Part shown: one piece after another, positions 20,653 through 35,600 of the stretch | How positions within the stretch are numbered: position 1 is the stretch's first letter | Layout: every line of letters starts with the position of its first letter | DNA from: Macrostomum lignano | Lineage: Eukaryota | NCBI GenBank assembly: GCA_002269645.1 | Contig: NIVC01000212.1 | Coordinates: forward strand, 124,001-188,000 | Reading direction: 5' to 3' | DNA length: 64,000 bases | The notes under the pieces: generated by a model | The model's database searches: none | The model's input: the letters and a program-made list of their open reading frames with translations, nothing else | What the model was told of the DNA's origin: nothing | Translations under genes and position numbers: made by a program

Positions 20653-23600
20653 ATGCTTGGAATTTGTCGTACTAAAGCTTCTTTGACTTTGCAACGGCTT
20701 GCTAAACTGAACTCATTTCGAGCGCTGAGCAGCTTCACTGTTGTGCCTAAATTTGCTTTGCCAAGTTCAAACAAGCACATCAGCACTTTGAGCGGGGTAA
20801 GGTCTTGTTTTCCGATGTCCTTGTGATGTACTGTTTAGTTATTACCTTAGTCTTGTATTTAAAATACTGCGGTATAGTTAGGCATAGCCATAGGGCTCTA
20901 ACTGTTAAATAGCACTGCTATCAATATTAGGCCTGTAGCAATTGTAAATAGGCCTGGCCCTAGTTTAGCTAGGCCCTTTTAACCTAGTCTCTCCCGACTC
21001 TAGTCTCTTATTACTTGTCTTTTAAGTTTGAGGTCTTCTTAATAATGCTTAGAGTTTAGCCTAGGTTGCACTCAGGAAGGTGTCACATGTATGGAAACAT
21101 GTTTCAGAATTTTTTGCAGTCACGTGTGCATTGTCCATAGTCCAGATCATGATAGGCGTATGCCAAAATGAAAATTGAAGTTTTTTTAACTTTATGCTGA
21201 TGTAACATTAAAAAAATTTTTACACAAAACCCAAAATGTTTATATGCCATGTTTTAAATTTAAGAATATATATTTTTAGGAATTAATAAAAGTTTTAGTG
21301 TTTTACTAAACTTTAAAATGGCTATTTTTGCCAAAAATAGATGTTCTTATTTTAGTTTTGTTTTTCTTATGTTATGATTATATTATTATTTTCTATTTTA
21401 GTTTCTAATATTTTAAAAAGCTTTCAACATTGGTTGATATATTTAACTATAAAAATACATTAGCCTTGACATACATGCGCAACTGCTGGCCGACCTGGCC
21501 GATTCGGCCACCGTAAATCGTGGCTGACCAGGGGTAAGTCGCAAAATTGAGTCAACCAAAAACAGAAAAACACAAGAACCAAGAAAGGCAAGAGGAAAGC
21601 GAAAGAAAGAGCAGTTCAGGGAAAATAATGAAGCAAAAGAAAAACAATTCGCAAAAGAAGCAAACTAAGTTGTAAAAATAATCAGGTAAGTCGCAAAAAG
21701 GATTAGGTAAGTCGCAAAAAGAATCAGGTAAGTCGCAAAAGGATCAGGTAAGTCGCAAAAGGATCAGCTAAGTCGCAAAAGGGTTAGGTAAGTCGCAAAA
21801 GGGTTAGGTAAGTCGCAAAAGGGTTAGGTAAGTCGCAAAAGGGTTAGGTAAGTCGCAAAAGGATCAGCTAAGTCGCAAAAGAATTAGGTAAGTCGCAAAA
21901 AGGATTAGGTAAGTCGCAAAAAGGATTAGGTAAGTCACAAAGGGTTAGGTAAGTCGCAAAAAGGATTAGCTAAGTCACAAAGGGTTAGGTAAGTCGCAAA
22001 AAGGATTAGGTAAGTTGCAAAAAGGATTAAGTAAGTCACAAAAAGGATTAGGTAAGTCGCAAAAGGGTTAGGTAAGTCGCAAAAAGGATTAGGTAAGTCG
22101 CAAAAAGGATTAGGTAAGTCGCAAAAAGAATCAGGTAAGTCGCAAAAGGATCAGGTAAGTCGCAAAAGGATCAGCTAAGTCGCAAAAGGGTTAGGTAAGT
22201 CGCAAAAGGGTTAGGTAAGTCGCAAAGGGTTAGGTAAGTCGCAAAAGGGTTAGGTAAGTCGCAAAAGGATCAGCTAAGTCGCAAAAGAATTAGGTAAGTC
22301 GCAAAAAGGATTAGGTAAGTCGCAAAAAGGATTAGGTAAGTCACAAAGGGTTAGGTAAGTCGCAAAAAGGATTAGCTAAGTCACAAAGGGTTAGGTAAGT
22401 CGCAAAAAGGATTAGGTAAGTCGCAAAAAGGATTAGGTAAGTCGCAAAAAGGATTAAGTAAGTCGCAAAAAGGATTAGGTAAGTCGCAAAAGGGTTAGGT
22501 AAGTCGCAAAAGGATTAGGTAAGTCGCAAAAAGGATTAAGTAAGTCGCAAAAAGGATTAGGTAAGTCGCAAAAAGGATTAGGTAAGTCACAAAGGGTTAG
22601 GTAAGTCGCAAAGGGTTAGGTAAGTCGCAAAAGGGTTAGGTAAGTCGCAAAAGGATTAGGTAAGTCGCAAAAATGATTAGGTAAGTCACAAATGGTTAGG
22701 TAAGTCGCAAAGGGTTAGGTAAGTCGCAAAAGGATTAGGTAAGTCGCAAAAGGATTAGGTAAGTCGCAAAAAGGATCCCGATTGAAAATCGGGGGCCCCA
22801 TCGGCACTGACTGCCGACGGATCGGCACTGGTCTGTCGGCACTCAGAGTGTCCGGTAAAGTGGCTCATATCGGCACCGACGGTCGGTACTGTCGGTACTG
22901 AACATCGGCACTCGCCGTCGGCATTGACCTAGAGCCTTCGCCGCACCCTCGCCCATTCGCCGTCGGCACTCATGTCGACACTCCCGTCGGCACTCATGTC
23001 GGCACTCCCATCGGCACTCCCATCGGCACTCATGTCGGCACTCCCGTCGGCACTCCCGCCGGCACTCCCGTCGGCACTCCCGTCGGCACTCATGTCGGCA
23101 CTCACATCGGCACTCATCGACACTCCCGTCGGCACTCCCGTCGGCACTCAAATCGGCACTCATCGACACTCCCGTCGGCACTAAATCGGCACTCATATCG
23201 GCACTCAAATCGGCACTCATCGATACTCCCATCGGCACTAAATCGGCACCCCTGTCGGCACGTAGGCCCGTAGGCCCGTATATCGGTACTCCCATCGGCA
23301 CTCATGTCAACCCTCATATCGGTACTCACATTGGCACTCATTGGCCCTCGTGTCGGCTCCCATATATCGGAGGCATTTTGTGTCGTGAATCAATGGAATA
23401 GTTAATTACGTTATTAGTGTAATGGCAAAATTATATTAAAATAAAATTAGACCTGTGGACGTGAGACAGCAATTTAACTCCAGCATCACTGAATCACCGT
23501 ACACGTACCACGTACATGTATCCCCTATCGAGCATGCGTTCCATAAAGAAGTGGCAGGCAATGCAGGAAATATGGACAGAACAGTGTAATTGTCACATAG

Positions 23601-32600: not shown

Positions 32601-35600
32601 CTGCCGTAGCTGGGCTCGCACATCCATCCGCCAGACCTTGGCGACGCGGTCCACTGACGAAAACTGCTTTCCGCAGGGTTCGCAGGTCAGTGGAAGGGCC
32701 TCCTCCACCAGGGGCCGGCTGCACCTAGGACAAAAAAGAAGTCGTTCGGAGCGCAGGGAGTTGCAGGACTCCAGAAACCGTCGCAGGCGGTACGGGTTGT
32801 CGGCAAACACGGCGTCTGGGGAAGCGCGAGCTTCGTGTAAAGCAGCAGGTCCGCCGTGGCGTTTCGCGACAACTTGTGCTTCTCGGCTAGGAGCTCTCCG
32901 TACACTGCCAAAGTGGCGTATGACAGGTGCGGCATTGTGCGATGCACCGGTTGCAGAAACCCTGGCGCGATGTGAACGACGCCGTCGTCGCCGCCATGGG
33001 CTGCCCCTTCGTCGACAGCACTGCTAGCACCGCCAGCCCCGTCGCCAGCACCGCCAGCCCCGTCGCCAGCACCGCCATCACCGTTGACACTGTCAGCGGA
33101 TTCCTCGATGACGTCGTCCCATAGCGCACCCTGGCGGATGGAAGAGAAAGGGTAGGAAGGGGAGGAAGGAGGGAATCATAACTAGATTGGTTCTAGGCAG
33201 CCGATGAACATTGCGTGCTTAAGTTTGCTGAGTGCTAACTGATATTTGCAGGCAGGATCACATCAGCCACGTATACGCACGAGTGCCAGCCTTCAACAGT
33301 ACAATGCAAGCCTTACGTCATCACCGTCATCATCAGACGTCGCATCGCTGGGGTCAGGACTGCGGTCGGATCCGCGGCCAGAGGCTCCATCGGAGCTGCG
33401 GTCAGACCCACGTTCGGAGTCGCAGTCGGATCCGCGGCCAGAGGCTCCATCGGAGCTGCGGTCAGACCCACGTTCGGAGTCGCAGTCGGATCCGCGGCCA
33501 GAGGCTCCATCGGAGCTGCGGTCAGACCCACGTTCGGAGCCGCAGTCGGATCCGCGGCCAGAGGCTCCATCGGAGCTGCGGTCAGACCCACGTTCGGAGC
33601 CGCAGTCGGATCCGCGGCCAGGGGCTCTATCGGAGCTGCGGTCAGACCCACGTTCGGAGCCGCAGTCGGATCCGCGGCCAGGGGCTCTATCGAAGCTGCG
33701 GTCAGACCCACGTTCGGAGCCGCAGTCGGATCCGCGGCCAGAGGCTCCATCGGAGCTGCGGTCAGACCCACGTTCGGAGCCGCAGTCGGATCCGCAGCCA
33801 GGGGCTCTATCGGAGCTGCGGTCAGACCCACGTTCGGAGCCGCGGTCGGAACTGCAGTCAGAGCTAGAGCTGAAAAGCTCAGCAGGACCGTCAGATGAGG
33901 CAACACCACCGGCATCGTCCTCGTCATGGTTAGCTGCACCTTGCATCGAACTAGATGCTGCGGCTTGGCCAAACTGCAGCACACGCATGCACTTACTTGC
34001 AGCTGCAGCTGCACGCCGATCGGACCGACAGACTGCCTCCAGCTTTCTCTTACGGTCGCGCGCTTTGATATTTTTGGCAAAGTCCATTGCCACGAAGACT
34101 TTTGGCAGCTGGCTGAAATGCGCTAGAGGATATGCGCATGGGAGACATGTCAGATGGTATTGCGAAACTACAGCTTTAAAAATATCCATGTTGTTGGATT
34201 GTCTTTCAAGTTGTCTAAAGCCATACGTATCATCAATACATGCTCTATGCCCCATGCTCCTATGCTCTAGATCTATACATGCCATTAGAACACCCTTTCT
34301 ACTGAGACAGTCCCAGTCCCGTTCAGGACCCAAGTGTATGATGTAAAAGCTGTATTGCATAAGTCTTACTGTCAAAGTCTCACAAAGTCCTACGAAGAGT
34401 CACACAAAGTCCTACAAAGTCTCACAAAGTCCTACAAAGAGTCTCACAAAGTCCTACAAAGAGTCTCACAAAGTCCTACAAAGAGTCACACAAAGTCCTA
34501 CAAGGGGCTACAAAATCCTACAAACAGAACTACCACAAAGTCGTACAAACTGTTACAAAGTCATGTCGGTAGTAGCCTTTGCTCACAACCTGAATTCATG
34601 GCAATATCTGCTACATCTCTGTACGACTTCTATCCGCCAATGCCGTATAACGTTTGCAACAAAATCAATGAAGGGTCGCTATGAATCGAAACGTCGCATA
34701 TTGAAGCGTGGGCTTTGTTGGATACTTTAGCCAATGCAGTTCCTGATTTATTTTGTGTGGGACACTTTTGCCAAAATAGCATGAAATTAGACGCATAGAA
34801 AATTAAGAGAACATGGGGACAGATAAAGACATATCGACAGTGCCGACGGGTAGTGCCGACGAGCAGTGCCGACGGGTAGTGCCGACATGTCGGCACTACT
34901 GGGCAGTGCCGACGGGCAGTGCCGACGGGTAGTGCCGACATGTCGGCACTACTGGGCAGTGCCGACGAGCAGTGCCGACGGGTAGTGCCGACATGTCGGC
35001 ACTACTGGGCAGTGCCGACGGGCAGTGCCGACGGGTAGTGCCGACATGTCGGCACTACTGGGCAGTGCCGACGGGCAGTGCCGACGGGTAGTGCCGACAT
35101 GTCGGCACTACTGGGCAGTGCCGACGGGCAGTGCCGACGGGTAGTGCCGACATGTCGGCACTACTGGGCAGTGCCGACGAGCAGTGCCGACGGGTAGTGC
35201 CGACATGTCGGCACTACTGGGCAGTGCCGACGAGCAGTGCCGACGGGTAGTGCCGACATGTCGGCACTACTGGGCAGTGCCGACGAGCAGTGCCGACGGG
35301 TAGTGCCGACATGTCGGCACTACTGGGCAGTGCCGACGGGCAGTACCGACGGGTAGTGCCGACAGTCGGCACTACCCGGTCGGCACTCAGTGCCGATACT
35401 GAGTGCCGATCGGCAGTCAAATCGACCCTGACTGCCGACAGGCAGTGCCGATCGGCACTCGGAGTGCCGACGGATTTTCAATCGGGGATTAGGTAAGTCG
35501 CAAAAAGAAGCAACTAAGTCGCAATAAGAGGGAAGTAAGTCACAATCAGAGGCAATCAGGGGGTAGTAGGTGCAAGTGTGGCAGGAGAGCAAAAACAGAA

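Follow-up and report, generated by a model that had tools for sequence, protein, structure and literature searches.

A multi-copy, three-gene CMC transposon of Macrostomum lignano that carries an F-box/leucine-rich repeat gene between its transposase and BEN-like genes

The closest described relatives of the element reported here are (i) En/Spm of maize, together with the other CACTA elements of plants, and (ii) SmTRC1 of the flatworm Schistosoma mansoni. Background on TnpA and TnpD, the proteins of En/Spm, is summarised in PMC1636069. SmTRC1, which shares CCC ends and 2-bp duplications with some insect relatives, is about 4.7 kb in length, with 54-bp terminal inverted repeats (TIRs), a 2-bp flanking repeat and one open reading frame (ORF) that is alternatively spliced (PMC1636069). 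The element in question occupies positions 22777-35486 of a 64-kb stretch of Macrostomum lignano DNA (the window, meaning the whole stretch that was analysed) and is identical to contig NIVC01000212.1 of assembly GCA_002269645.1 (Mlig_3_7) over all 12,710 bp (100% identity). It includes a transposase gene, an F-box/leucine-rich repeat (LRR) gene and a BEN-like gene. The structural conclusion that this is a three-gene element of the CACTA/Mirage/Chapaev (CMC) superfamily with an acquired F-box gene is well supported. An earlier reading of the window, made from the sequence alone (the sequence-only reading), had proposed a CACTA/EnSpm transposon with these limits and with three co-oriented, intron-containing, GC-rich genes for a transposase, an F-box/LRR protein and a BEN-domain protein.

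The M. lignano element shares with maize En/Spm and plant CACTA elements a Transposase_21 transposase, a 3-bp target-site duplication (TSD), short TIRs, numerous short repeats of either orientation near both ends and a second element-encoded protein. It differs from En/Spm in its CCC termini and in its accessory protein, which has a coiled coil and a BEN-like domain and is non-homologous to TnpA. The gene organization is also distinct: the En/Spm proteins derive from splice forms of one transcript, whereas the M. lignano element has separate annotated genes, including a third, F-box/LRR gene. SmTRC1 and the M. lignano element have in common a flatworm host, a Transposase_21-related transposase and TIRs that start with CCC. 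The two differ in that the M. lignano element is 12.7-14.5 kb long, encodes three genes, ends in TIRs of 14 bp and is flanked by a 3-bp TSD.

Transduplicated sequences of the Pack-MULE and Tgm-Express type are fragmentary or chimeric and have a recognisable close host parent. The M. lignano cargo is complete as a gene, and its one relative in a search that sees fairly close relatives only is the gene model of the element. Other described systems share with the F-box cargo the general idea of an effector, borne by a selfish element, that diverts the machinery of the host. Polerovirus P0 and nanovirus Clink are F-box effectors, and VANC of the VANDAL transposons is an element-encoded effector; none of these is homologous to the F-box gene of the element. 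Fungal DNA transposons that encode TET/JBP dioxygenases (PMC12730594) are likewise not homologous. The telomeric retrotransposons of Drosophila include captured fragments of PIWI-interacting RNA (piRNA) genes and a fragment of an F-box gene (PMC13534243). These Drosophila captures, also not homologous, are 140-235-bp fragments that are thought to act via piRNAs, compared to the complete coding gene in M. lignano. The full-text literature yielded no account of the family, of BEN-type genes in CACTA relatives or of an intact F-box gene in a DNA transposon, with Repbase and Dfam outside the scope of this search; to the sequence-only reading, too, no described CACTA family with a dedicated F-box gene was known. 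The nearest cases that the search brought up are the Drosophila fragments and the fungal TET/JBP elements, along with reviews of gene capture in plants.

The element is bounded by perfect 14-bp inverted repeats, CCCGATTGAAAATC, which match the 64-kb window at the two ends of the unit and nowhere beyond these (Table 1). The termini are of the form CCCGATTG..., i.e., CCC...GGG. The insertion target is a 21-bp satellite, AGGTAAGTCGCAAAAGGATT, that extends from 21666 to 22776 and resumes past 35489. When the flanks are joined with a single GAT, a seamless satellite unit is formed and the empty site is reconstructed; the insertion was thus precise, with a 3-bp TSD, and the limits given by the sequence-only reading are exact. 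The satellite comprises about 54 units (21666-22776 and 35490-35555) and decays fast to the right of the element.

Near both ends, the element is rich in a short repeat. The 9-mer GTCGGCACT is present in 54 exact copies in the window, compared to 0.39 expected by chance, and all exact copies are within about 650 bp of either element end and in mirrored orientation. When up to one mismatch is allowed, 31 copies are detected at the left end and 48 at the right end (about 80 in total). In each 53-bp unit of the right end, three GTCGGCACT motifs point the same way and a further pair forms a palindrome. Between these arrays lie the three genes, co-oriented and interrupted by introns as predicted; all are on the minus strand, which the sequence-only reading had left unstated. 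The coding sequences have a GC content of 0.63 and a third-codon-position GC content (GC3) of 0.71-0.72 each, and both values are higher than those of every other ORF measured in the window. The introns and spacers of the element have a GC content of 0.40-0.50. The spacer between the F-box and BEN-like genes includes a direct duplication of about 276 bp (27148-27594, minus strand), which is seen as a repeated peptide in translation.

Further loci were reached via the NCBI gene models BOX15_Mlig033474g1 (transposase) and BOX15_Mlig022939g3 (F-box), which led to five further places (L001, L003, L004, L005 and L006), on contigs that include NIVC01000930 (TSD CAG), NIVC01001499 (TSD TTA), NIVC01002297 and NIVC01002877. 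Exact-protein look-ups with the 422-amino-acid ORF of the window and two UniRef BEN proteins returned no contigs. Gene content and gene order are unchanged in the further copies, which are 97.5-99.9% identical, with the exception of L006, in which the contig ends at 12660 and cuts the element before the BEN-like gene. L004 and L005 are each flanked by their own perfect 3-bp duplication (CAG and TTA, respectively), and L005 is inserted within an intron of a neurotransmitter-gated (ligand-gated) channel gene. The similarity between loci stops at the TIRs. At least three further loci hold the three-gene element, two with their own 3-bp duplications. The sequence-only reading had asked whether the three genes co-occur in multiple TSD-flanked copies or whether the F-box or BEN gene is confined to this copy; all three genes are present in every copy recovered (save for the truncated L006), next to different 3-bp TSDs and at several loci.

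The other copies are 13.9-14.5 kb compared to 12.7 kb for that of the window. The longer copies have 1.3 kb of additional spacer between the transposase and F-box genes and 0.78 kb between the F-box gene and its BEN-like neighbour. Neither is present in the window copy, which is thus a deletion derivative in which the three genes were spared. The first of these spacers, just upstream of the F-box gene, includes a (GA)n tract as well as a fragment of about 150 bp from a different CMC transposase, which is 45-55% identical to the P0005/P0007 families at the amino acid level. Substitutions between the copies number eight in the transposase gene, five in the BEN-like gene and none in the F-box gene (six copies). 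The indels between copies are all single-base and mostly in homopolymers, a pattern that tends to be expected of PacBio/Canu assembly errors, and the coding tandem repeats vary in repeat number between copies. Mlig_3_7 is a PacBio/Canu assembly with a gene annotation built from RNA sequencing (RNA-seq) transcripts (PMC5730564); thus, all three element genes are transcribed, and they are annotated as separate transcription units. The element is a young, multi-copy, cut-and-paste DNA transposon of M. lignano, and the family is probably still active.

The exon model of the transposase follows PAA59085.1 (P0004), a gene model from another copy. Exon 1 includes a 60-bp coding tandem repeat present eight times (33365-33850). 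An exhaustive HMMER/phmmer representative search identified 3249 homologues of the transposase at E <= 1e-3. Of the 60 homologues scanned, 41 match Pfam Transposase_21 (tnp2, PF02992), with a best E = 5e-16, and a few also match DUF4218 or Plavaka; in a 10-protein scan, P0015, P0031 and P0039 are above the PF02992 gathering cut-off. Other routes were less productive, as a word-indexed protein search with the transposase returned a weak tick protein only, a PDB sequence search with the transposase and BEN-like ORFs gave nothing useful and a metagenome scan with the transposase alignment confirmed no relative. The alignment of the 60 homologues has invariant columns at D376, D466, C485, C488, R528, R627, E642, N713, H715, H720, G729 and E740, all of which are kept by the transposase of the element, as are the cysteines of an upstream CxxC...CxxC zinc finger. 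Its conserved acidic residues are D at 32439-32441 (NIDAF), D at 32169-32171 (LDAPQR) and E at 31641-31643 (RGHEFE). The transposase gene of the window has a one-base frameshift at 32818-32821 (C4 here versus C5 in intact copies), and the gene is intact in L001, L004 and L006. Unless this frameshift stems from an error in the long-read assembly, the window copy would have to rely on transposase from its siblings.

The closest relatives of the transposase, at 40-45% identity, are from a second M. lignano family (Mlig001703, loci L007 and L011) and three metagenomic contigs (L008, L009 and L010). The element of the sister family is 9.1 kb long and has the TIR CCCGCTGGAAAA, which is visibly related to CCCGATTGAAAATC, and 3-bp TSDs (AAG in L007 and GTC in L011). 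Its subterminal repeats are of a GGCGTA type, unlike GTCGGCACT. The sister element has two genes, in which the transposase is followed directly by a coiled-coil protein with a C-terminal BEN-like domain. A 5'-truncated second sister copy is found on L011 (21855-27637), 5.4 kb downstream of the full copy and with the same right flank; it is either a local duplication or an assembly artefact. The three metagenomic loci are known from adjacent gene pairs, and the comparison of TIRs and TSDs covers the sister family. On these contigs the transposase is also followed directly by an accessory gene of matching build, in which an N-terminal 'YWVV...GPFE' stretch and a CxxC motif precede a coiled coil and then the domain that bears the motif LLRxLFxxEELxxxxxTGR, and there is no F-box gene. 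The coiled-coil/BEN-like gene hence follows the transposase in five families, three of which are metagenomic (at least one marine). As the transposase and BEN-like pair is found in the sister family and in L008-L010, the BEN-like gene is an ancestral partner of the transposase. Judged from these sequence comparisons, the core of the lineage is two genes, a predicted DDE transposase with an N-terminal zinc finger and a coiled-coil/BEN-like gene. The accessory proteins of the clade also have in common an N-terminal 'YWVV...(L/I)LxGP(F/Y)E' domain, followed by CxxC, that has no Pfam match.

Transposase_21 (tnp2) is the family of the CACTA transposase TnpD. The TSDs of CMC transposons are short (2-4 bp), with 3 bp typical of CACTA proper, and a 3-bp duplication flanks each of five insertions (GAT, CAG and TTA for the three-gene element; AAG and GTC for the sister). 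The Transposase_21 homology, 3-bp TSD and subterminal repeats thus place the element in the CMC superfamily. The CACTA/EnSpm label of the sequence-only reading is retained at this level of the superfamily and abandoned at the narrower one: strict membership in the plant CACTA/EnSpm group was rejected, as the termini are CCC rather than CACTA and the second protein is BEN-like, with no match to a TnpA family in a Pfam scan. Membership in the Mirage/SmTRC1 group with its 2-bp TSD was also rejected; the CCC termini are shared, but the TSD is 3 bp at the five sites.

The BEN-like protein is 683 amino acids in the window copy and 653 to 683 amino acids across copies. Its gene is free of stops and frameshifts in the window and intact in each of the five copies that extend that far. 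The splice joins KEVTLR to NKTKRE across a GT-AG intron (25150-25394), and exon 2 includes an 18-bp coding tandem repeat present 24 times (24405-24832) that encodes a GTGNGS-type repeat. The ORF differs by one residue from UniRef A0A1I8JMC4 of Macrostomum lignano, which is titled 'BEN domain-containing protein'. The BEN call of the sequence-only reading stays under the Pfam threshold and is backed, besides this UniRef title, by weaker, concordant evidence: (i) the accessory protein of the sister family scores 18.1 bits against PF10523 (E = 0.003), under the 23.2-bit cut-off; (ii) the BEN-like motif is the only place at which the two M. lignano accessory proteins show local similarity; (iii) the top three Foldseek matches among 350,542 PDB chains are BEN domains, namely NAC1 7bv9 (prob 0.87), Insv (Insensitive) 4ix7 and NACC1 8yzs; and (iv) a profile built from the five families has BEND6 as its top PDB match (E = 0.45), with the alignment covering the signature motif. 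The signature helix motif considered is LLxxLFTxEELxxxSxTG. These lines are individually weak but concordant, and together they suggest, on sequence and modelled fold, that the accessory domain is BEN-like. The binding of specific DNA sequences is well established for BEN domains (PMC11601247 and references therein).

The F-box/LRR protein is 568 amino acids, or 550 amino acids if spliced from an alternative in-frame GT donor at 28941, which is 54 bp upstream of the GC donor of exon 2. The introns of the gene are GT-AG, with intron 2 being GC-AG in the RNA-based NCBI model. The F-box gene (four exons) and the BEN-like gene (two exons) have no stops or frameshifts in the window copy, as the sequence-only reading had stated, and five of the six copies of the F-box gene are intact. 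The F-box call of that reading is upheld by Pfam, in which PF12937 (F-box-like) matches exon 1 with E = 4e-13 and the spliced protein with E = 1.2e-12 (47.8 bits versus a 24.3-bit cut-off), and PF00646 matches the spliced protein with E = 2.8e-9. The F-box motif is canonical and includes VCRRW, and the Pfam LRR matches are below threshold. An AlphaFold2 model of the RNA-based, 390-amino-acid product is a regular strand-helix solenoid. Its Foldseek matches are led by FBXL2 (E = 1.1e-9) and FBXL17 (1.2e-8), then SKP2, TIR1 and D3/MAX2; similarly, a PDB sequence search with the protein gave FBXL2 and SKP2 as best matches. By its sequence and predicted fold, the protein fits the FBXL type, with an F-box and a C-terminal LRR solenoid. 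It resembles FBXL2, FBXL17 and SKP2, its best sequence and fold matches, in its architecture, in which the F-box is N-terminal and an LRR solenoid with cysteines comes next. It differs from them in that the identity is only 14-18%, the gene is transposon-borne, and Skp1 binding and a substrate are putative.

The distribution of the F-box gene is restricted. The RNA-seq-based gene model BOX15_Mlig022939g3 is found on six contigs, every recovered place of the model is within the full element and no solo segment was returned. Similarity to the F-box protein is not detected in the sister element, in L008-L010 or in 165 other proteins fetched, which include eight gene models with the accessory protein of the sister family. 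A 5.8-billion-protein search, which sees fairly close relatives only, found the gene model of the element as the only relative. The sequence-only reading had allowed for a host parent of the cargo; no close F-box parent was found by this search of close relatives. On this distribution, the F-box gene is a late acquisition that is specific to the family that bears it, placed between the transposase and the BEN-like gene. It is a complete gene (start, stop and four exons) and neither a fragment nor a chimera. The CMC transposase fragment upstream of the gene points to recombination, perhaps with another element, as the probable route by which it was acquired. The same fragment, found in the long copies, and the AT-richer spacers on both sides of the gene could instead be taken as signs of a composite, in which the F-box gene resides on a second mobile element nested in a two-gene CMC transposon. 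This arrangement is very unlikely, as the F-box segment is flanked by neither inverted nor direct repeats and by no visible TSD, and it moves with the outer TIRs at every locus seen, with no solo copy among the places recovered.

Several observations weigh against the interpretation of the locus as a mobile, three-gene CMC element with a functional cargo. At the protein level, a direct Pfam scan of the transposase gave no match and Pfam BEN (PF10523) has no match to the window protein even at E <= 10; as neither protein reaches a Pfam threshold directly, their assignments are transitive or structural. The BEN matches of Foldseek have E-values of 0.18-1.0 and were obtained with a single-sequence AlphaFold model at a predicted local distance difference test (pLDDT) score of 60. 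At the level of divergence, no pair of copies is divergent enough for purifying selection to be detected on any gene. The ratio of nonsynonymous to synonymous substitution rates (dN/dS), which the sequence-only reading had proposed as a check, was computed and is uninformative at about 99% identity; with zero substitutions across six copies it says nothing of the F-box gene, the intactness of which may reflect youth alone. At the level of the assembly, the flanks of L001 are discordant (CAG/TCA, at L001 9050-9053/22906-22909) and a scaffold gap, a run of N at about 3300-3944, hides the left end of L003; these end anomalies are due either to recombination between copies or to assembly mis-joins. 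The M. lignano assembly is known to be redundant (PMC5730564), and L004 and L006, which share their left flank, are probably one insertion in a duplicated part of it. The shared flank is what would be expected if the copies were genome or segmental duplications of the DV1 line, with the F-box gene a host gene between two transposon-derived genes. This explanation is extremely improbable, given that the flanks of the window copy, L004 and L005 are unrelated and have their own 3-bp duplications (GAT, CAG and TTA) at the TIRs, that similarity ends at the TIRs with the empty site precisely restored, and that L005 is within an intron of an unrelated gene. A host gene situated between two unrelated elements was also rejected, as the F-box gene moves with the outer TIRs. 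Overall, the reading of the locus as a three-gene CMC transposon with a two-gene ancestral core, a family-specific F-box cargo and a proposed TnpA-like role of the BEN-like protein is considered probable; the role of the F-box protein is weighed separately below.

The BEN-like protein may be the counterpart of TnpA in En/Spm, by analogy. In this role, it would bind the GTCGGCACT repeats, its predicted sites at both ends of the element, and oligomerise via the coiled coil to bring the ends together for the transposase; it possibly also regulates the promoter of the element. Between the two M. lignano families, the subterminal motifs and the BEN-like domains both differ, which fits such end binding without proving it.

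The sequence-only reading had proposed a self-contained module that couples transposition and end binding or chromatin control to the targeted breakdown of a host protein; such a joint function of the three genes is hypothetical. The F-box protein is predicted to dock on host Skp1/Cul1, such that a protein chosen by the LRRs would be ubiquitinated. The target may be a host factor that restrains the element, or the levels of an element-encoded protein may be tuned instead. In favour of a role for the F-box gene are its completeness, splicing and transcription, its retention despite the loss of spacers and a composition that matches the core genes. An effector function of this type, directed at either a host restraint factor or the element's own protein levels, is put forward tentatively and at distinctly less than an even chance. 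An almost even chance is given to the F-box/LRR gene being a neutral passenger, i.e., a host FBXL gene captured between the core genes by aberrant repair or recombination that hitch-hiked in one recent burst without use to the element; the remaining probability falls to other readings. A passenger would account for the absence of the gene from the sister family and the three metagenomic relatives, the CMC transposase fragment and (GA)n tract upstream of the gene are indicative of a messy recombinational origin, and the copies are so similar that F-box intactness carries no information. There is also ample precedent in plants, in which CACTA and other transposons are known to capture genes (PMC13317346 and PMC1947982). 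By contrast, a passenger is less readily reconciled with a complete four-exon gene that has a canonical F-box and a full LRR solenoid and is transcribed as its own mRNA, or with the absence of a similar M. lignano protein from the 5.8-billion-protein search (fairly close relatives only). The GC and GC3 of the F-box gene (0.63/0.72) are within 0.01 of those of the core genes, which makes it less likely that the gene came very recently from an average gene of the host, and the window copy lost both flanking spacers yet kept the F-box gene. The most specific form of the effector proposal combines a transposon-borne E3-ligase adaptor, acting against host restraint (e.g., piRNA or chromatin silencing in germline and stem cells) or in the turnover of the element's own proteins, with a BEN-like equivalent of TnpA in an uncharacterised animal CMC clade; this combination is speculative and rather unlikely as a whole.

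The remainder of the window includes other mobile elements and candidate host sequence. A retrotransposon of the long interspersed nuclear element (LINE) type is found at 46799-50538 (plus strand), with an apurinic/apyrimidinic (AP) endonuclease ORF followed by an 883-amino-acid ORF with reverse transcriptase and RNase H. The pol region of a Gypsy-type long terminal repeat (LTR) retrotransposon (protease, reverse transcriptase, RNase H and integrase) is at 52862-55713 (minus strand), in long open frames. Two long ORFs at 17013-19492 (minus strand) match a WD40/IFT80-like beta-propeller and tetratricopeptide repeats (TPR) and are probably exons of a host gene of the intraflagellar-transport type. 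Long ORFs with no Pfam match are located at 9499-10923 (474 amino acids) and 62425-63306 (293 amino acids), both on the minus strand.

Table 1. Coordinates of the element features (window positions unless a locus is named).
Feature	Position	Strand	Remarks
TIR CCCGATTGAAAATC	22777..22790	+	3' end of the element in gene orientation; sequence match
TIR CCCGATTGAAAATC	35473..35486	-	5' end of the element in gene orientation; sequence match
Target-site duplication GAT, left copy	22774..22776	.	same GAT after the right end
Target-site duplication GAT, right copy	35487..35489	.	bases outside the right TIR
Subterminal GTCGGCACT array, left	22800..23302	+	12 exact; at <=1 mismatch, 30 forward + 1 reverse; 12-bp period
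Subterminal GTCGGCACT array, right	34839..35471	-	ten 53-bp units; 31 exact reverse + 11 exact forward
Transposase exon 1	33317..34087	-	acidic, Ser-rich N-terminus; mapped from PAA59085.1
Transposase exon 2	31290..33130	-	CxxC...CxxC zinc finger and predicted catalytic core
Transposase exon 3	30464..31027	-	C-terminal domain; mapped from PAA59085.1
F-box/LRR exon 1	29185..29802	-	start codon, F-box (residues 23-66), first LRRs
F-box/LRR exon 2	28887..29031	-	end at 28887 from RNA-based NCBI model P0166, GC donor
F-box/LRR exon 3	28270..28734	-	cysteine-containing LRRs
F-box/LRR exon 4	27623..28101	-	LRRs; stop codon 27623-27625
BEN-like exon 1	25395..26659	-	422 codons; N-terminal 'YW(V)' domain, CxxC, coiled coil, C-terminal BEN-like domain (about residues 300-422)
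BEN-like exon 2	24363..25149	-	basic, low-complexity tail; splice from UniRef model A0A1I8JMC4
Conserved N-terminal accessory domain	26659-26400	-	also L009 5097-5400; L010 2944-3250; L008 7850-8100
Two extra spacers	L004 8241-9575, 12641-13440		also in L001, L003 and L005; L006 has the first only

Element-encoded anti-silencing proteins are known in a few plant transposons, in many viruses and in hardly any animal DNA transposons. If the effector reading is true, the F-box protein would be the transposon counterpart of the viral F-box suppressors. The two M. lignano families provide a natural comparison in one genome, that of an F-box-bearing family with a sister that has the same core and no F-box gene. 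RNA interference, transgenesis and published germline and stem-cell transcriptomes are available for Macrostomum lignano, and the benefit of a transposon-borne ubiquitin-ligase adaptor is thus directly testable in this organism. The presence of the BEN-like gene in five families suggests a candidate TnpA-like end-binding partner for a whole animal branch of CACTA-related elements, and such accessory genes may be a source of the BEN-domain regulators of hosts.

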